Shown here in pieces: positions 3,601 to 20,301 of a stretch of 64,000 nucleotides of DNA. The notes under the pieces were generated by a model that was not told where the DNA came from, made no database searches, and was given only the letters and a program-made list of their open reading frames with translations. The stretch comes from Oculina patagonica (taxonomy: Eukaryota), in contig NC_135771.1 of the NCBI RefSeq assembly GCF_052425735.1, positions 6,634,001 to 6,698,000 of the forward strand. Direction: 5' to 3'. The position numbers were made by a program, and so were the translations under genes. Each line of letters begins with the position of its first letter. Position 1 is the stretch's first letter.

Positions 3601-6600
3601 TTGAGAGTAATTTTTACATGTAAAGAAATAATAACTTGCTTTGTATTCTGCATTTCTTGTAGGTTCAGCAAACAGTGGTGGGGGTGTGACCAACCCTAAG
3701 TGTGGTGGGACTTATGGAGTTCCTGCAGGAAAAGGTTTATCTTTCTTCTGCCGTCCCCCTTTGTATGGAAGATATGTGACAATCAGAAGTTTACTAAATA
3801 TTGCATTGACAGTCTGTGAAGTTGAAGTATATTCTGAAAAACGAGGTATGATAATAATGTTATTTTTTTATTTATTCCATCAAATATATGTAAAGACTGT
3901 ACACTGTACGTGATGCGAAGATGAAAATTAATCACATCATGGATATGATTGTGAAGCTATTTGCTGGTACATGCAGGTAAGTCATACAGGTTCGTTCCTT
4001 GGTAGAAGGACATTTTCAGGATCCTTTTTCTGAGTATGCTGTGACAGTGACTGAAAAATCGTCATTGTCATCTCTATTCACTATGCAGGCTTTAAAAAAC
4101 AGACCATCACATTTTCATCACTGTGCATATGCCACCCATCAATATTCAAACCATAGCAGTATGCAAGATGTTTGTTATTAATCTGCATTTAGTTCAATGG
4201 CCTAACCTAACTCAAGTCTCTGTAGCTCACTTGTAGATCATCCAGACTAGTTATCATCAGGTCATAGGCTTGGCTACTGTTGGAAAAAAAAAATCATAAA
4301 CCGTGTTTCAGGGTATACCTGCGTCGCTACATGGAAGATCATAGTAATCAAAATACAATAACAGGGGGGGGGGGGGGGGGGGCAAGAAAGTCGGCACTTT
4401 TTTTGGATACAGGATGTGAGTCAATATCAATCAAGCCGTTGCTATGAAAGACGTCACCAAAAGTTTTGTTTTCTCAGAAAGATTTAAATATCAATGACTG
4501 CATGCGTGTGAAATGCGAATAGTGGCGGTGTTTGCGTTTGATGTTTCACGCCACTGATTTCTCAGCTCATGTTTCACGTCACTGAGAATGTTTTGGCGGC
4601 GTGGAATACCAAGCGAAAAATTGGTCACGGTTGACATTTAACAACCAAAAAATGGTAAATCATTTCAGAATCATTGGAGTTATTTTTAATTCGTATAATT
4701 CACAAGTCCTACTTTTGCCAGAATGGACACCGATATCACCGTTTGTTGTTGTGATGTCCGGCAAACTTCAAAAGAACAAGCAAAATGCAAATAGCTATTG
4801 CGTTTTGTGCACGGTCAAGACCAAGACATGCGAACTAGACAATGACTTTGTCAAGCTATTGACTGTGCCCTTAGCAACCGTTCGATAGCTACTGAACACA
4901 TTCGGTTGCCCGGCACCGCTATGTCCCCTTTTTCAGTCGTGTAACAAAGGGAGTTTCTCCCCCCCCCCCCCCTGTACAATAATAATAATTATAAAAGAAG
5001 AAAGAATGAATAGCATGCAACTGGTGTGCACTGGCCATCTGTGCATTTACTTTTCTTTATTTTAAAAAATCATAAAATTGAAATTTCTATATATTATTTT
5101 CTTGAGTTTAAACCAGCATTGTTAACAACTTCGTATTGTTGCTGAATGTAGTATGGCAAGTTTATTTCTGAACCCTGTTTACTATTGGTCATTCCAAGGT
5201 TGCGCAGGGAACTGGGGCGAGTTTTTAATTTAAAGCAATCGATAATCTGACACTACCACATGAAAGAACCCGGTGAGATTGTTCATTTGACTACGTTTGA
5301 TGCTTTTAGGATGAACAGAGACGACGTTATGGGCCTTGAAACATGGTGAAAAATCCATACAAACGTCTCTTATTATGAGACAGCGTCCCGAAAACCGTAT
5401 AAACTCTATTTTTTAATGCATTTCTGGTATACTCTTCAAAATGGGCAAACATAGTGATTTTCATCTTAGTTTCTTTCAAATAATGGATCTTTGGCAGGAT
5501 TTTACAGCTGAAACAAAACGAAAAAAAAGTTTTAAGAGTTTATATGGTTTTGGGGGACGCTGGCTCACAATAAGAGACGTTTGTATGGAATTTTATCCAC
5601 GCTTCAAGGTCCACAACTTCGTTTCTGTTCATTCTGAAAGCATCAAACTTAATCAAATGACCAATCTCACCATGATCTTTAATTTGGTGGTGTCGGATTA
5701 TCGGAACGGCCAATTGTTGCATAATTTGAGAATGTCACACTCACCATAATCTTGCTTGTGAATTTGGGAGGCCGGGTAGTGTGTTTGGATTTTTAATAGA
5801 TCCCGGCAGTTTCAAGCCCTGGATATTCTTGTTGAAATGAGTAATGACAATAATAAATAATAATTTTGCTCTTTATCCACTGCTCCTGATCGAACTGGAA
5901 TTTATATATAATATATCATTCAATTTATTTTTTCCTGGTTCACTTACATGTGCTGTAGTATTAGGCTGGGCCATTGATGCGGTGATAGAAGAGTGTTTAC
6001 TTTTGATTTTATTTCAAGCATGCCAAATTCAGGCTCTTGGTGTGACCAGCAGGGATGTATTTCCAGACAGCAGCTTCTCAGCCTCATCAACAAATGGTAG
6101 TAACGCTGCTTCTAAAGGTCGGCTGAATAAAGTTGGTGCTTGGTCACCCAGTAATGACAGCAATCCTAATGACTATCTTCAAATCAACCTCGAATACGAG
6201 TTCTTTATTTGTGCTGTAGCTACTCAAGGAAAGTCAAATGCTGATCACTGGACAACAAAGTACAAGTTACTTTTATCACTTAACAATGTTGACTGGGTCA
6301 CCTACCAAGAAAACAGTGCTGATAAGGTTCGTTGAAAATACATTAACACAATGCCATGTCTTTCTCATAACTATGAGTACCCAAGCCAAAGTGTTCAAGG
6401 ATGCATGTAGCTGCTGAGAGTGGTATATTTAACAATTATTCTACGAGCGCAAAATGGATATGAGATGGTAGATAGGCAACGAGACGCGTAGCGCCGAGTT
6501 AGCTTTAACGATCTCATATCCAACAAGGGCGAGTGGAATAATTGTTTTATTATAAACGCCCAAAAAATTGCAAAATTTCGTTGACGCGTATCGGCTACTA

Positions 6601-9600
6601 AATTTGTGATGAATTGAATATGAGCTCATATACCATTGCCAGTTAACCAATCAAAACGCAGGAATTGCGATATGCCATTGCTAGTTTTTAATAAAGTCTA
6701 GTAGACACTGCAAGTTCAATTATGATGACAATGGTGCTACAGGGAACCTGAGTGTCTTGACATGACTGGGACTTTCTAAGACTGACTGTGGATGTGGTAA
6801 TCGCTGTTGCAGTGACTAACAGTTATACAGACTCTGCATGGCTCAGCTGTAACTGTGACTTCGTCTGCGACTTTCGCTGAGCAGGTGTAAAGCTTTTTAG
6901 CTTTTTGTTTCTTAAAAAACAAACTCCCCCCACCCCCTTGAATCTGTCTTTGGATTGTAACATATGATGAACATTGATAAAAAAAAATATGTATGAACTA
7001 CAGTTAAACCTCCTCTAATGGATACCTACCATAGGCAGACACCTCCTGTATGCAGGCAATTAGCTATGGCCTCATCTCCCCTTAATGGACACCTTTTCTG
7101 AAAGGCCACTTTTTTTAGGTCCCAGCGGTGCTTACGGGATGTTTAACTGTGTTAACTTATATTGCAGGTCTTCAGTGGTAATTCTGGAAGAAATGACGTA
7201 GTTAAACACAATCTTAAAGAAATTGCAAGAGCACGGTTTATCCGGTTTCAGCCAACAAATTACTCAACTCACAAAGCTCTTAGAGTCGAAGTGTTCGGAA
7301 TTCTAAAGCCCGCAGGTATCTTGCTTCCTTTCACTGTTATCGTTCACATATGCTATTGTGTGCGTGGTAAATCAGTCGTAAAAGTGTCCTGTGACAAACA
7401 AAATGTAAAAGTACATGTAGGTATATATCTTTCAAACATACCTTACATTGGACAGAGGTGTTAACTTGCTTGTTCATTTTTTTATAGCTCCAAGCCAAGC
7501 ACCTGGTAGCTTTTCCGTGACTCCACTGTCTTCCACAAGTGTTAGAGCGACCTGGCAGTTACCACAGACAGGCTCCAGACATGAAGTAATTACAGGGTTT
7601 AAACTTTTGTACGGAAGAAAGGGCTCTGCTGCAGATTCACTAACTATTTTAACCATTGAAAATAATTCCACTTTTACCAGAGATGTCACTGGATTGCGAA
7701 AATGCACAGAATATGAATTCCAAGTGTTAACTTTCACATATGTTGGAAATGGTCCGAAAAGCTCTGTTCAGCCAGTTACAACATTTGGTAAGGTGTCAAA
7801 GATAGCTGTCTAAAACGTTTTAAAGCAACTTAAAGTAAATCAACAATTTATGGAATTTCTTATTAACCGAACTTCACAATTAAGCCTAAGCTTCAATAAA
7901 TGAAGCTCCCAGTTTCACATACTTCAGCAAAAAAATGGTCGCAATATGTTAATATTTCAGGACATAACGTCTATAACAAAACAATTATTCCACTCGCCCT
8001 TTTTGGGTATTTTTATCATAATCAAAATCATAATCAAAGTGTTAGCGTATACATAGGCCAGAACCGCGGGTGGTATACCCTAATATTCATGACGAGGTAA
8101 AAAGTGAGAAGGTATATACCTTAAAATAGAGTTCTGTTATTAATTTGAAATTAATGGGTTTTGATTCCCATCGGGACTCAGATTTTGTCTTTGTCCCATG
8201 CTCGTATCATTGTTGAACAATTCATCCCCACTATTTATCACCGAACTTAAAATTTATCATCCTTATTATTATTTTACTACACACTTGATGATCTCAGAAT
8301 TGGTGATCCTGGCAGTATGCAAGACGCGTTTCACATATCAACCTAGTAATTATAAATAGCCCAGCTTGTCACAAATCTCTCGTAGCTCAGTTGGGTAGAG
8401 CGTCCAACCGGTATCTTGGAGGCCATGTTTTCGATTCCCGTCAGAGACTCAATTTTTTTTCTTTGTCCCATGCTCGTGTTATTGTTGAACAATTCATCTT
8501 TATTATTTATCACCGAGCGTAAAATTTTCAGATGTTGCTATGAAAAATAAATTTAAACCTGCACTCCTTAACTCTCTAGGGGAACAGGGATGTCACAATG
8601 GGGAGAGCGCTCGCCTCCCACCATTGTGGCCCTGGTTCGATTCCCGGACCTAGCGACATATGTGGGTTGATTTTCCGTTAGTTCTCATCCTTGCCCCTAG
8701 GATTTTTCTCCGGGTTCTCCGGTTTTTCTCTCTCCTGAAAAACCAAACTCTAATTCGATTTGTATTGGGAACCCGCGTAAAAACCAGCTAGGGCTGATGT
8801 GGCTTCCTCTCTATATATAGTAATTATTTTTTTTATTTCCTTATTTTATCTCTCTAAGGTACATGTAAGCCTGTCACCAGAGACCTACCAGAAAGAACTA
8901 TTTTTGCGGTTGGTGAACTAGCAATCCTAACATGTGAGGTCAGTGGATATCCAGAGCCCTCTGTCACATGGATTAAAGATGGAGACACTAACATACCGCG
9001 AGCTCAGTTTAGGAATAATGGACACATTCTTGTTATTCAAGATGTTCGTCCTCTTGACAGTGGCGTTTATGAATGCAAAGCATCAAACAAGCTTGGAGAA
9101 GGCCGTACATCTACAACATTGATAGTCGCTGGTAAGTTGCACTGGCGGCAGTATATGGACTTGACAAGTATTGAGATTTAATTCAATGTTGAAAATCTAA
9201 GTAAAGCTAACCCTAGACTTGCTTACAAAGTGTAAGTAAGCCAAGTGCTTTCCATCCTAGAGACGTGAAGATTGTTCTGTTCAAGCTTAGCGTTCTTGCT
9301 TATAAGTTTTAAACAAAAATGTAATTACTATTTGGTTTTTTAACTCAAGTTGAATGTCGTATCATTTATTAATAACTTCCTTACGTTATTTCAACCATGC
9401 ATTGGGACGTTGCATATTTTTGTTAACAATCTAAAATTCTAAACTCATTAAGGAGTTTATGTGTACATTATTTAAAACATACTGCCGGGGGGGGGCCCAC
9501 CCCACCCGGACGACACACAAGAACAATGAACATATTGTAGCCTATTTTTTGGGGGGGAGGGGGAGGGGTGTCAATCAATTGTTACAATTTAATTTATAGT

Positions 9601-12369: not shown

Positions 12370-15300
12370 ATGTCGGAGCTCGATCGGAAGCTATATTTCC
12401 GGGTGGCTTTCCTCGCTTTACTTCTTCCTTTAGCTTCAGGTGAGCCCAGTATTATTCTTAATCTATTTATAAGTTTAAGTGTGTCGGATAAAGCGACTGA
12501 AGTTTGTTTAGACGCGCGCTCTTTGCGATGAAAGAGAACATTACACAGTACTTCACAAAGGGAGATGATGCAATTAAATGAAAAGGAACCTCACAGCCAA
12601 GAACACATCAGTTTTGTAGTTTCTGTAGATCACAGGTTTCTGAAATCGTGGCATTAGTCAGTTACAGCTTATATGCTTGAGTCTCAAAAGAGTGTTGCTT
12701 GTGACTAAAAACGGCGTACCTTAAGATTTGCAGATGCAAAGTAGTGGAAATTGCACAACTGACATCAAAGAGGAGGCTGTCTCTTAATGAAAACAACTTA
12801 AAACGTTACATGGTCAGGCCCAGCGAAAAATCAACTTAGAACTGTGCTAAATTATGTTCAATTGAAAGCGTTTAACGATCGCACTGGTATGTCTGGTTCT
12901 ATTTATATAGTCGCAACTTTTTCATTATTTTCATTGAAAGTGCAGTCAGATGTACCAAAATATAAATATATGACTGTTCACGCACTACAGAAAAAAGTGA
13001 CATTACTGCTATTTTAAAGCATCGTAACCAACAATAACAACATAACTGAAGCAAACATTGTGTTGTAGTTATACACGAGTCATGATGCAATATTCCTGAA
13101 CTTTGCTTCCGTGCAGTTATCTTGCTTATGATCGGTAGTCAAAAGAAAAGTTGCAAGGTTTCTCGGTGTGTGTGTGTATTTTTTAATTTATCCTAGTTGG
13201 AGAGAGAAGCATTTTTCGGAATTTTGCTTACATAGTACCTAAAGACCCGATGACCGTTCTGAATGAGTTGGGCAGAAAAAGCACGATCAAAATTTAACAC
13301 ATAGAGTTTATAAGAACTGATTTAAAGCTAAATATCTGCCAGTGTAAAGCCCGAGGAAAACACGCAAGCTCGATTGGTTAAAAACGCTAGGCGAGGAATT
13401 TTCACGATATTGCATTCCTTTGTTTGTTCATACCTTTTCAGATGATTTTTAAGTAATTTAAAGAAAACCTTCATTATAAGAAATGTAATTGTAGGACGAA
13501 AGTTCTTGTTCTTCGGAGCTTTAAACTTAGCGTGCGTGCGGAAATGCAAGGAGAGAAATGGAATTGCTGCCAAATTTAACCTTTTTGTCAAGTTTTGTGA
13601 TCAGTGCGATATCGATGTTTCTCTTGAAATGTTAAGTGGAATTTGCAAGGGAACCATATTGTGAAATAAGGCCATGATATCAAGCCACGAAATTTGATCA
13701 AATAAACCGGTTTGCTTATGGCAGGTATTCAGTTTTTTGCAGGTTGCAATGTGTTAAACTTGAAGGGGTGACAGGCTCGCAAAATCTCTACCGTCGAAAA
13801 CCTTTTGAAAACCTCTTATATTTTGGCTTTAACGAGCAAATCTTCTAAGAATTTTCCTTTATTATTAGAAATAATTGGTGTTTATTCGAGATGAAGTTGA
13901 ATGAACCCCAATATAAAGGCTAACCTTTAGGGTTAGCTAATTTTGGCTACCTGGAGTGCTATTCAGGCTAACCGAAGTGCTAAGTAGACACGAAAGTCGA
14001 TTTTTCAACCCGCAATTAAGCAACCTGTAAAAAAATACCTGCCCGTTTGCTTGGGTCTTTAATTTACAATGTATCGTTTTCAGTTTGTTGGTATTCCAGT
14101 AGACTTTCCCAAAGTCCATAGATCGCTTCTGGCGCTTCTGGCTCTCATCCATTTATTCGAGATCGAGTTGGAGGAAGTCTAGTATTCTAGACGCTCTTTC
14201 AAACAACCACTTGTCTCATAAATGAAAGTAAATGCTCGTGAATGTTGCAAGCAATGCTTGGAATGAACAAATTCATGAGTGTCGTGTTTTTTTTTCTCAC
14301 GTTTTGCTACAAATCAAATCAATGGAACTCAGTTTGATGGAAAATGCTCTTTTTTCGGTTTAGAGTGTTTTGTGAACTTTGCAGAGTTTTTTGTTTGGTT
14401 TTTATGAATCCAGTTTTCTGGATTCATAACAATGATTCTGCAAGAGCACAACAGAGATTTCGGCAGAAAAACAAAGGACACTTAATATCTATAATTTCCG
14501 CTTCTGCAGTGACCGAAGGAGTTAGGACAAAGTGTGAACCAGCGAGCCATATGAGCCAGAAATCCCAAAGTCCTAATAAAAGACTAACCGCATGTTACTT
14601 AAGCTAACCAAAAATAACATGGAAACTGCGGTGATAAACATTACGGACACCGCAGTTTGCGTGTTATTTTTGGTTTAACTACGATGGCCAAAGAAAAAGA
14701 GTATTTACCTAAACTAACTGTACGCTAACCAGAGTGCTGTTTAAACTAACCGGAGTGCTATATCGGCTAGCCAATAATTATTAAGGATAACCGGAATTAC
14801 GTTCCTGCAGTTCGCCTGAGGTACGAAATACAAGTTTACGTCTTTTGTGACGACCAAGAACTTTACTGCAGGTCCCATACTGTACGGAATTAATTTTGTT
14901 CATCATTCGCAAAGATTACTTTCGACATAAAGGTTAAAAACTGCCATATTTCGTATCTTTAATTCCTTTTGTTTCCGGTCATGTGTCCGCTACTTGCAGA
15001 AGAAATCGAGAAGTACAAGAACAAGTTCAAAAGTAGCCAGGGTTGACACAAAATGTATGTCTGTTATTAAAGCTTAAAATTTGAAGTGTATTACTGTGAT
15101 GAAAATTGAAGCATCAGGCATTAATGAAGGCATAATAGTGTTATTTTAGTTAACAACAAAACGGTATTTTTTAAAAAGTCATTTTTGCCTTCCTTCGTCC
15201 TTTTAGCCTTGTTTTCTTTCTTCTTTCGTTCGGTCGGTCGGTTGTTCCTTTGTTTATTCCTTTGTTTTTCAATTTATTCCTTATGGCAGGAGGTTGCATA

Positions 15301-18300
15301 AATTTGGATCTTGGAATGGAAAGAGGATCAATTCCGGACAGTAAAATAACTACTTCATCTGTACAAAGTGCCAACACACCAGCCAAGAATGGTCGACTAA
15401 ACTTTGCATCAGGATTATCATGGTGTGCAGGAACAAGTTACACTAATCCATATCTACAGATTGATCTACAAACACTTCATATCATCTGTGCTGTGTCCAC
15501 TCAAGGGAATTCCCAAGCTGATCAGTGGGTGACAAACTACACACTACAGTCATCCACAGATGGGTCAACTTGGAAAAATTATACAGAAATTGGAGAAATT
15601 AAGGTAACAAGTAATACGCGCTATACTATTATATATATTTTTTTCTCAACCTCGGAATTGCATTTCTAGCTTCTGATTGTCCTGATCCCGGTACCAGCGA
15701 ACCAGTGACCAAGTGAAATGAGTGCGGAGTCCCCGGGGACCCAAGAATGGGACGAGGGAGGTGAACAAGACGGGACACCGTGACGCAAAAAGGAGAAACT
15801 GACGAACACGAGGAGTGAAGAAGCAGCGACGGATGACACGTCTGTCGCCGACCTCCGGTCCCTTCGGGCCCGCGACGGCGCGCCGCACAGACAGAGGGCG
15901 CGCCGCCCCGGCAGGACCGCCCCGCCCACCCACCAGGGCAGGACCGCGGGAACGAGCGCGGCGCCTCGGGCACCCCGCGCGGGCAGAAATTGTTAAATAA
16001 TTTTTTCATTAGAAAATGTATGATGTTACCCCATCATGAGGCCACGCTATTACAGCTCCAGCTGTAAAAATAATTTCATTTTTTCAAATTGTAATTCCCC
16101 ATTTATTTATTATGTTATTGTTATCTAGGCTATAACTTTTTAAATAGATCGTGAATGCATTTAGGTAATGCAGCGCAATTAACTTTGTACTTAGAATTGT
16201 TGTTGTGGATTATGATGATGATNNNNNNNNNNNNNNNNNNNNNNNNNNNNNNNNNNNNNNNNNNNNNNNNNNNNNNNNNNNNNNNNNNNNNNNNNNNNNN
16301 NNNNNNNNNNNNNNNNNNNNNNNNNNNNNNNNNNNNNNNNNNNNNNNNNNNNNNNNNNNNNNNNNNNNNNNNNNNNAGCTCAGGTTTAATAAATGTTTGA
16401 TTCCCCCAAAACTGTCTCTCATCTCGCATCTTGTTGTAAAATTATTATGCACACCATTTTGTATATAATTATTTTAATGCTCTCTTTTTAATTTTTAGAC
16501 TCTTAAAGGAAATAGTGATAAAAACTCAGAGGTTAAGCACATTCTTCATGAAGTTGTTTTAGCGAGGTATTTGCGGTTTCTACCTAAAAGTCACCATGGT
16601 GGTGTGTGTTTGAGAACAGAGGTGTTTGGAGTGAAGCAAAAACCAGGTAATTATTACTTGTCATACTTAAATACAGCTTCAACATATTACAATTCGACAT
16701 TATTTTTTAACGACCATTTTATTCACTGGATGTAGAATAGTGGTAGTCTTAAAGAGATCTTTGTTTTTCAACAAATGTAAAGCGATATCCGTGCAGTAGC
16801 AGTCTTGCAAGGGGGGATTTATTGCAGATCTCAGGTGTTGCTGTGAAAAATGAATTTAAACCTGCTCTCTCCGGCTCTCCTTTAGGTAAGCCTGTCGCCA
16901 AAGACCTACCAAAAAGAACAATTTTTGCGGTTGGTGAACTAGCAATCCTTACATGTGACATTAGTGGAGATCCAGAACCTTCTGTCACATGGAGTAAAGA
17001 TGGAGACACTAACATACCACGAGCTCAGTTTAGGTATAATAGACACATTCTTGTCATTGAAGATGTCCTTCATGTTGACAGTGGCGTTTATGAATGCAAA
17101 GCATCAAACAAGTTTGGAGAAAGCCGTACATCTACAACATTGATAGTCGCTGGTAAGTTGCACTGGCTGCAGTGTGACTAGATAAGTATTATTACTGGAA
17201 GGCGGGGGAGGAGGGAGAAGGAGCGAAATTACTGTCAGTCGTCACCGCCCCCTGCGCGTCGAGATGTCGGCGATGCGAGCGAGCTGAAGCCAATCCCACA
17301 CTGTGTGATACCTGAACGAGCTGATCGATGGATGCTGCAGGGAGGGCGGTAGACATTCAGGTGAGTGTCACTGACGATCGTCTGGCGTTGGTGGTGCCCC
17401 CCGTCGACTGATGGGCACCAGAGAGGGACCGCACTCCCGCCACCCCGCCCACTGCGCGAGGAGACTCCAAGCCAAGAAGAGGGCCGCGACCAGAAAGTCA
17501 GACTGGACACAGACGACGACAGGATCAGGCGCCCGGACCCCGCCGGAGAAAAAACGCCTATCGCAGGTAAGTATTGATAAGATATGCTTGATTGATATAA
17601 TTTTATTTAATTATTGATATAATTTGATTGACAAAATTTTTTTTATTTATTTATATAATTTAGTTATTTTCACGAGAGACTATTTCTCGAGGCCTGGCAT
17701 TCGCAGACGACGGGGGGAGAATTCGGATGTTTAAATCCCTCGCGTGATCACGCGCAGGGTCGTATTTTTGATGGCGTAGCACGCGCAGAACTGTAAACCG
17801 TTGAAAGCCGTTGACCAAAGTTATTGGTCGAAACGTCTTTAAAGTTTTGATTAACGTTGTTTTAGTGTTAGCACAAGTCAGTGGCGCGCAAGCACAAATT
17901 TTGTATTATGAGTATTACAATACAAACAAGTATGAGTATTACAATATAAACAAAGACGTTTTTTGTTCACAAAAATAGATTGATAAAATTTAATTCGTGG
18001 AAAATGATCTTTAAAAATATATCTGACTTATGAGTGCACTCTTTTCCCACAGTGCCACCTGTTATAATTGAAGACATTTCTCCACCTTCAGTGACATGTG
18101 AAAGGCAAACCCTTTGTTCTCTTTCTTGCCATGCAACCAGTGGTACTACGTTTAATTACTCTTGGACAAAGAATGGTCAGGTTCCAGTTAGTGATAATAT
18201 CACAATCATGAACAATAGCCTTGTTCTCACGCCTCGTGATGCAATGGATTATGGGGTGTATATATGCCATGCTACAAATAGCTTTGGTTCCACAGCTTAC

Positions 18301-19548
18301 AACATCACGCTTTCCGAAAGTCAGAAATCTTCAACATGTGCAGATACGATAAAGGGAGATGACAGTGAGTGTCGTTAACTTGTGTAGATGATAAATAAAG
18401 ACTGTTTTCCAAAAACCACAAGCACAACCAGGTTACGAAAAAAGGCTCCGATTATTCAAAAGGGGTATAAGGCTATCTACAAGAAAGATCATTACCTGGT
18501 GGTATATGTAACAAAACCACTACGGTATTCAATCGATCGTTAATTATCTGGTGCAAAGTGTTACCGATTCTTCGGACATCCAGGACAAGAAAATGAGTAA
18601 AAACCAAAGGAGGCCAAACAGCTTTTCTCTTGACCTCTTGTGCTTATGCATATATTGTTGTTGTTGTTGTTCTATTAGTAGGACGTGTATGACTTAAGTA
18701 TATGAATAATGCACTGAACTATTAAAGTTGCTCCCTTGAATTTTTCAAGAGTACATCTTCCTGAATTTGAACTGTCAGGGCTCCATCACGCTTGCTCCTT
18801 CATCCATTTTGATGACGACTGAATGAACTTTTCAAAACAAGTGGGCTTAGTGACATCAGCGTTGCCATAGCAATACAGCGGATGACGCCATGTATTTTGT
18901 ACATTAGTAAGAAAACACTTAAAATACTTCGGATCGGAACTGCAAGTCTATTTGCTTTCCATCAACAAAGGCACATGGTAATTGTTTAGCTCACCCAGCA
19001 ACTATGGCTTAACGAACAAATTAATTTACTTTGAAGCTTTTAATAATGTTTTCACTATCTGTTATTATTCCTTTTTGGCAGATGCAAACAGCATCATCAC
19101 TTTATCCTTCATCATGTTCGTGTCGCTTGTTGTAAATGGCGTGTTAATATGGCGGCTTAGACGAGCTGTCCGTGACAACAGAACAACGACTGAAGACAAG
19201 GCCATCACGGATGACATTGGTCAACCTGGCGTGTCAGAGCCAAGTTTATATATGGAAATCCGTCCCAGGCCTTCGGAAGGGCGGCCACGTGTACCTTCTG
19301 AGTGTAGGAGTCTTCAGGAAGCCAACAACAATCCTGAATGTTACAATGTGGGAGGCAATGGAAACGAACTTGACTTATCACGTGATCAGCAACTATCTTC
19401 GAAGGAGCAGTCACGTGAACCTCTTGAGGACAAAAGTCCACTGGGAACAAAAGAGAACCCTGGATGTTACAATGTGGGATTTAACAAAGGAAACAGCGGA
19501 AACGAACACGGAGAAATTTCCGATGAAGTTTACATTGCAATGAAATAG
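12370..19548 (+). CDS. Receptor paralog R2, short form: SP-F5/8C-Ig-Ig-TM-tail (525 aa), Tyr-depleted tail
   Basis: Exons 12370-12439 (MSELDRKLYFRVAFLALLLPLASG), 15290-15603, 16499-16646, 16886-17152, 18053-18364, 19082-19548; 1578 nt, open frame. Most exon lengths match R1/R3/R4. Could also be a decaying copy. Confidence 0.85.
15607..16011. other. R2-specific intronic insertion with GC-rich core
   Basis: The homologous R3 intron (25021 onward) lacks it; similarity resumes at about 16013; core 15680-15985 is very GC/CpG-rich. Confidence 0.6.
17191..17567. mobile_element. GC-rich 377-bp insertion with 8-bp direct repeats and no TIR
   Basis: TAAGTATT at 17183-17190 and 17568-17575; R1 and R3 have a single AAGTATT at this intron site. 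Confidence 0.55.
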
Positions 19549-20301
19549 GAAATTCCCAAGGTTGAGTTGTTTCGTTTTATCTTACTATTTTTGTCATTTT
19601 ACTGTGACACCTAAGATATTTTTGAGGTACATTGGTCGGTACCTCATGAGCGACCTTCTCTTTTTTCCCCCAAAAAAACGTACCACATGACGTATGCTTG
19701 TGACTGTGGTGGATGTCATGGGCTGTTTAGAATAGTACTAATAGAAAATGTTTAGAAAATATATATCTGAACCATAGAAGATTAAAAAACGTATCTATGT
19801 TGAATAGAAAATAGAATAGAATAGAATATTTCTAGATAATATATGTAGGCTATATGTGAATGCAAAAACATGTAAGTAGATCATAGAACTGAATAATTTT
19901 ATTTGCAGATAATATAGGTAATATTGTATTCCTAGGACATTTGTGGTTAATGAAATGTTATAAGATCATAAAAAGTATTTAATAACAATAATAGTTATAA
20001 TAATAAAAATAATAAAAATAATAATAATAATAAAAATAGTAATAACATTAAAATAATAATGGTTTATTAACCGGTTGTCCATTTACGTGGCTCTTCGCCT
20101 GTTAACTTACACAGAAGTGACAGTATGAAATATTTTCCCATTTTTTTAAATTGTTATTGCAAGGTTAGCAAGCAAAACCTGAATGCCACAGCCTTTTTAG
20201 AAAAGTACTTGTAGAAATGTTGAGGCGATTTAGAGTATGTAATTGTAAACAATAGCATGTGAGTAGATCATAGAGCTGAATAATTGTGGATAATAAAATA
20301 C

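Follow-up and report, generated by a model that had tools for sequence, protein, structure and literature searches.

Patthy's intron-phase rule concerns the extracellular proteins of metazoans, in which symmetrical phase 1-1 modules are shuffled as exons. In vertebrates, tandem clusters of immune receptors include two-domain KIR genes that descend from three-domain genes, as well as paired or decoy receptors. Tandem duplication of receptor and lectin families is also described as pervasive in scleractinian genomes by Noel et al. 2023 (PMC10236652). A receptor array of the coral Oculina patagonica resembles each of these systems and departs from each. As in phase 1-1 exon shuffling, its F-type-lectin-like (FTL), F5/8C, FN3 and Ig modules are bounded by phase-1 introns and can be removed or repeated in frame, but here a block of modules seems to have been lost, not gained, and both intron halves are still recognisable against the paralogs of the array. 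As in KIR-type clusters, one member of a rapidly evolving tandem array, whose Ig-containing receptors have tyrosine-motif tails, has a shortened ectodomain and an altered tail, whereas the host is a cnidarian, the ectodomains carry discoidin and F-type lectin domains, and a deletion of 7.5-13 kb would have removed 7-10 exons at once. Like the arrays of PMC10236652, it groups many copies of a candidate recognition receptor in tandem on a single chromosome, at least 17 of them on C14, while the R1-R4 family introduced below and its module deletion do not appear in that paper, the text of which gave no match for discoidin, domain loss or exon shuffling.

The window, the whole stretch of DNA analysed here, comprises 64,000 nucleotides (C14:6634001-6698000) of the 529-Mb O. 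patagonica assembly, and self-BLAST found in it four paralogs arranged head to tail, R1, R2, R3 and R4. The family extends along C14 with at least 17 matches to F5/8C-1 and 13 to Ig1, located at 6.31-7.02 and 9.53-9.56 Mb; architectures were mapped over about half of the 740-kb cluster and over 3-kb loci around the matches. Copies outside the window are named here by their position on C14, c6573, c6760 and c7023 being those at 6573, 6760 and 7023 kb. Module copy number differs widely across the family: R1 and the copies at 6564 and 6602 kb have 1 FN3 exon each, and the copy ending at 6353 kb has at least 7; this variation was seen at C14:6340005-6349640 and in other copies (loci L032, L006, L014 and L005). 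Within the array, R2 stands out by the intron at 16647-16885 (239 nt), which is a chimera of two introns. Our reading, which we regard as probable, is that one non-homologous deletion in a full-length ancestor fused two phase-1 introns and left R2 still spliced and in frame. Of this reading, we infer the direction (a loss), the occurrence of a single event, the mechanism of joining and any functional consequence.

R3 served as the full-length relative. Its gene model was built from open frames and conserved GT-AG sites; every intron in it is of the GT-AG type, and it reads through 1288 aa without interruption, encoding in order a signal peptide, F5/8C-1 (2 exons), two F-type-lectin-like modules (2 exons each), F5/8C-2 (2 exons), FN3 modules, Ig, Ig, and, in a single final exon, the transmembrane helix and a tail rich in tyrosines. 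Searches of Pfam with single exons confirmed F5_F8_type_C, fn3 and I-set. The FTL exons matched PF22633 and PF00754 (E = 1e-9 to 1e-14), profiles of galactose-binding-like folds of which none is F-type-specific, and they carry ...H..(x)..WWRVDL...NR, which we take to be the F-type signature. In the R3 model the exons absent from R2 measure 270, 174, 243, 183, 308, 148, 306, 303 and 285 nt, which amounts to 2220 nt or 740 codons. The sequence-only reading had described the lost block as FTL-FTL-F5/8C-FN3; the block is indeed absent from R2, but R3 has four FN3 exons and not one, three of them intact and the fourth hit by a transposon. This element of about 1.5 kb, with terminal inverted repeats of about 65 nt, sits at the end of the fourth FN3 exon (37307-38821) and has at least 30 genomic copies at 92-98% identity; a separate repeat of about 420 nt in R3 (34223-34642) has many genomic copies at 97-98%. 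Transposon copies dominated a DNA search of the genome with the R3-only interval.

Table 1. Features of R2 and of its relative R3 that bear on the fused intron (positions are those of the window).
Feature	Position	Strand	Evidence
R2 exon 1, start codon and signal peptide, phase-1 donor	12370..12439	+	Predicted from homology to R3 23016-23085 and R4, translation, GT donor
R2 exon 2, first part of F5/8C-1, phase 1 in / 0 out	15290..15603	+	Pfam PF00754 E 2.1e-14; AG/GT sites
R2 exon 3, second part of F5/8C-1, phase 1 end	16499..16646	+	PF00754 positions 86-127; RNA
Left half of fused intron (about 65 nt)	16647..16711	+	Aligns right after the orthologous donor to R3 26311 to about 26372, R4, R1 and C14:6776596; beats shuffles
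Right half of fused intron (174 nt), with acceptor	16712..16885	+	Matches R3 39589-39752, 88-92%, E 2e-19
R2 exon 4, Ig1 (I-set), 267 nt, phase 1-1	16886..17152	+	PF07679 E 2.9e-19; RNA joints 16646/16886 and 17152/18053
R2 exon 5, Ig2, 312 nt, phase 1-1	18053..18364	+	PF13927 E 7e-12; RNA joint 18364/19082 (X15, X16)
R2 exon 6, TM helix and cytoplasmic tail with fewer tyrosines, stop	19082..19548	+	ORF, alignment to R3; RNA contigs over 19082-19600
R3 left parent, intron after F5/8C-1	26311..26372	+	BLAST, alignment, shuffle test
R3 right parent, intron before Ig1	39589..39752	+	BLAST, alignment
R3 interval without R2 counterpart: FTL1 (2 exons), FTL2 (2), F5/8C-2 (2), FN3 x4, introns, repeats	26373..39588	+	Self-BLAST, exon map, Pfam, gene model

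The six exons of R2 encode an intact product of 525 aa consisting of a signal peptide, one F5/8C domain joined straight to Ig1, a second Ig domain, a transmembrane segment and a tail. Exon 2 scored 54.2 bits against PF00754, above the curated cut-off of 28.2 for this discoidin profile, and exon 3 alone scored 23.1 bits. R2 thus keeps a membrane-distal discoidin domain and may, as far as its sequence suggests, still bind a ligand; the ectodomain had been called lectin-less, which is too strong a word for a receptor that retains one domain with a ligand-binding fold. Alignment with R3 confirmed that the same gene carries a tail depleted in tyrosines, several of those of R3 being gone through substitutions and a gap of 7 codons. 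The dN/dS ratio between R2 and R3 is 0.9 for the transmembrane and tail exon, compared with 0.36-0.41 for the parts that encode the signal peptide, discoidin and Ig. A pseudogene was rejected on the intact 525-aa ORF, the spliced RNA in two studies and the dN/dS of the ectodomain, and a processed retrocopy or a copy of an exon-skipped transcript was rejected on the retention of all five introns and on the position of the junction, which is intronic and 65 nt from the donor.

Comparison of R2 with R3 by window self-BLAST yielded two matching blocks, R2 16436-16681 with R3 26100-26344 (87.4%) and R2 16712-17194 with R3 39589-40056 (85.3%), which flank the R3-only interval. Because the exons could have carried these BLAST scores, we tested the intron halves alone. 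The right half (16712-16885) matched R3 39589-39672 at 88% over 84 nt (E = 2e-19) and R3 39693-39728 at 92%, and its final 70 nt or so are also conserved in R1, c6573 and c7023. The left half, taken without the donor consensus (16653-16711), scored 18 against R3 and 21.5 against the copy at C14:6776596, compared with a mean of about 9 (sd 1.6) for shuffled sequences, 1 of 2000 shuffles reaching the R3 score and 0 of 2000 that of the other copy. The homology of the two parts of the intron to two R3 introns, proposed from the sequence with the first 60 nt or so matching R3 from 26311 and the remainder matching R3 at about 39590-39752, is therefore borne out by BLAST and shuffles with each half aligned alone.

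Under laxer scoring the left homology reaches 16699-16714 in R4, R1 and the copies at C14:6776596 and 6565236, and the right homology begins at 16712. Multiple alignments showed that, past the break, the full-length copies share sequence that is missing from R2, and that R3 upstream of 39589 has no counterpart in R2. These alignments place the break at about 16700-16712, which corrects the interval of 16705-16725 given in the sequence-only reading, and within only about 12 nt; the divergence of 12-15% prevents a finer placement and makes any microhomology or filler at the junction unreadable. The junction is free of N, as that reading had also held: the runs of N in the window are located at 495-626, 16223-16376 and 60870-60998, the nearest being in the preceding intron, 270 nt upstream of the preceding exon.

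The same junction was found in a second contig of the assembly, C985 (1281 nt), which was used only where it aligned to sequenced window bases and which is 97% identical to R2 over 16436-17190 (755 nt). Additionally, we placed contigs of four public runs (X1, X3, X15 and X16; all Logan contigs, not raw or long reads) on 16377-19600. In X1, DNA from a coral metagenome of a separate study, a 291-nt contig (record 2) on 16619-16907 crosses the junction with exactly the variants of the C985 type, and in X3, also DNA, both the C14 type and the C985 type are present at the junction, the latter with 28.3 of a depth of 44.1. X15 and X16, which we took to be RNA and which come from two further studies with two organism labels, showed zero depth over the introns and GT..AG joints at 16646/16886 (skipping 239 nt), 17152/18053 and 18364/19082, so that the RNA joint from 16646 to 16886 expected from the sequence was seen in contigs of two studies. 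Contigs of both runs span 16497-16644 of R2 and then join Ig1, and a loose end at 16497 carries the last codons of exon 2. One X16 contig (record 16) links 148 nt of exon 3 to 127 nt of Ig1 with 0-2 mismatches to R2, while the paralogs differ from R2 by at least 10% in the exon 3 and Ig1 exons. X15 loose ends at 16646 run into an FTL1-type exon in the same phase, and these are transcripts of full-length paralogs. Together, C985, the DNA contigs and the RNA joints establish that the junction is present in two diverged alleles and in independent samples and that the fused intron is functional in splicing. Overall divergence between the R2 versions of C14 and C985 is 3%, and in the fused intron it reaches 4.6%, high values for alleles; only the C985 type is seen in X1, and both types in X3. 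The 3% divergence between C14 and C985 is consistent with old alleles, and C985 and the R2 of C14 may also represent a very recent duplication.

The RNA joints also confirmed the intron phases of R2. The fused intron has phase 1 at its donor (after 16646) and at its acceptor (before 16886), so the frame is kept across the RNA joint, and the R3 introns homologous to the two parents of the fused intron are phase 1 in the model. The statement that all inter-domain introns of the family are phase 1 holds in the R2 and R3 gene models, domains map to single exons or exon pairs by Pfam, and the lost coding length is divisible by three.

A collapse or mis-join of paralogs during assembly could in principle have produced an intron absent from the animal. 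There is a gap of N close by (16223-16376), similar genes in tandem are easily collapsed, and the 400 nt just downstream (17191-17590) lack support from the DNA contigs placed. This explanation was tested and rejected, and we give it almost no weight, since the junction recurs in a contig 3% divergent and in DNA contigs of two separate studies, and since RNA of two further studies is spliced exactly at 16646/16886 with 0-2 mismatches, against at least 10% for the paralogs. While the junction itself is real, its direction had to be sought in the phylogeny, because the homology of the intron halves would look identical after an insertion into a short ancestor. R2 might then be the ancestral short form, the block of lectin, discoidin and FN3 modules having been inserted in the ancestor of all other copies; the intron halves are neutral on this point, nucleotides of the two F5/8C-1 exons give a tree in which R2 sits in a polytomy, and for the F5/8C-1 protein tree rooted with the paralogous F5/8C-2 domains, again a polytomy, a position of R2 outside all the other copies as their sister is not rejected (AU p = 0.377). 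However, the Ig1+Ig2 tree places R2 behind two well-supported branches, in a 5-copy group with R3 and c6760 (96/95) that lies within an 8-copy group (99/98) apart from four distal copies. Synonymous distances, taken from the rows of R2, R3 and c6760 only, are 0.26 between R2 and R3 and 0.28 between R2 and R1, about half of the 0.47-0.50 between R2 and the distal full-length copies (R3 to distal copies, 0.46-0.59). The left intron half of R2 aligns to the proximal full-length copies, whereas distal copies align within the exon only. In the DNA sampled, at least 10 other copies, in both deep clades, have the F5/8C-1b exon followed by the FTL1a exon, and among the sampled copies with a readable junction only R2 and C985 pass from F5/8C-1b directly to Ig1. 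An ancestral R2 would require silent sites to have evolved at least two times more slowly in R2, or gene conversion reaching exactly to the junction on both sides. We therefore consider an ancestral short form very unlikely, and the nested position of R2 in the Ig tree and in synonymous distance makes it very likely that the short form is derived by loss, in family trees without an outgroup root; the loss assumed from the sequence at the outset is supported to that extent. Gene conversion in the array could distort these trees: a tract of about 1.8 kb comprising an intron and the FN3-1 exon (R3 32457-34226) is 96-98% identical to an inverted copy about 90 kb away (C14:6762394-6764538, minus strand) between flanks of 85-86% identity, which from the sequence looks like recent gene conversion.

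Given a loss, the ancestor of R2 would have had a signal peptide, F5/8C-1, FTL, FTL, F5/8C-2, FN3(n), Ig, Ig, TM and a Tyr-motif tail, and a single genomic deletion of about 7.5-13 kb would have removed at least 7 exons. On the left it would have begun about 65 nt inside the intron that follows F5/8C-1, and on the right it would have stopped about 174 nt short of Ig1; the ends would have been joined non-homologously, by end joining or a replication slip. The fused intron would then have received its donor from one parent and its branch site and acceptor from the other, with correct splicing and a preserved frame, and the outcome would be a 525-aa receptor with the membrane-distal discoidin placed directly on Ig1. 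Non-allelic homologous recombination between repeats was rejected, there being no extended identity at the R3 break sites: window self-BLAST (E 1e-10) found no repeat common to R3 at about 26300-27200 and 38900-39600, and the alignments run into unrelated sequence past the break. The parent introns thus lack long shared homology, which argues for non-homologous joining. This would hold equally for an unequal non-homologous crossover, in which the post-F5/8C-1 intron of one paralog was joined to the pre-Ig1 intron of the next, so that the first gene lost its 3' portion and the next its 5' portion, together with the spacer between them, and R2 would be a hybrid. Unequal exchange is expected in a dense head-to-tail array, the unresolved 5' tree leaves room for different ancestries of the two halves, and the left half is best matched by 6776596, R3 and R4 and the long part of the right half by R3 only. 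Such a crossover is nevertheless not required, since both halves fit one R3-like parent, R2 and R3 being 90.5% identical in the 5' exons, 87.7% in the 3' exons and about 75-76% in the non-coding flanks on both sides; the break would still lie in non-homologous sequence and call for the same joining chemistry. We regard the crossover as improbable and prefer a deletion within one gene. As for its size, the R3-equivalent span (about 26373-39588) is 13.2 kb, but includes the transposon of about 1.5 kb, the repeat of about 420 nt and extra FN3 exons, and R1 and the copies at 6602 kb and 6564 kb have 7.5-8.3 kb between F5/8C-1b and Ig1. The span of about 13 kb first proposed is accurate for R3 and overstates the probable original deletion when set against these three copies; the original loss was probably 7.5-13 kb.

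What R2 shows is the ordinary, established way in which phase 1-1 modules behave, in the form of a loss whose scar can still be read, and as the mechanism is already established knowledge the case settles no open question. It is an unusually legible example of remodelling, in which undeleted relatives, both intron halves, two alleles and the spliced message are available from one genome. It indicates that a coral receptor array varies by whole modules, besides point changes in lectin loops, and it offers R2 as a natural 'minus-lectin' variant for probing the roles of the F-type lectin and second discoidin modules. The block deletion and the loss of tail tyrosines might together have made R2 functionally distinct, a short receptor that partners its full-length neighbours as a decoy or modulator, a suggestion that we consider unlikely. 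Were it true, R2 would display the distal discoidin with neither the binding of fucosylated ligands nor the usual signalling, and the coral array would constitute a paired-receptor system independent of those of vertebrates.

Three smaller features of the array were also recorded. The stretch at 17191-17590, in the R2 intron between Ig1 and Ig2, consists of 400 GC-rich nucleotides (62% against 37.6% for the window) that are present only in the C14 haplotype; in their place, C985 and the X1 and X3 contigs of DNA carry 21 different letters. Depth was zero at 17241-17564 in all four runs. It is flanked on both sides by TAAGTATT and ends in cag/gtaagt, one search of the genome found no other copy, and either a polymorphic insertion or an error of assembly may account for it. 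Another GC-rich stretch (71%), at 15740-15985 in R2 intron 2, is unrelated to the first and has no counterpart in R3 or R4. Finally, the Ig1 exon apparently starts 6 nt earlier in R1, c6573 and c6760 than in R2, R3 and c7023, with gt[at][ct]at ahead of gtaagcc (window 8859-8870, L006 and L007), a difference that would be an in-frame acceptor shift of two codons.
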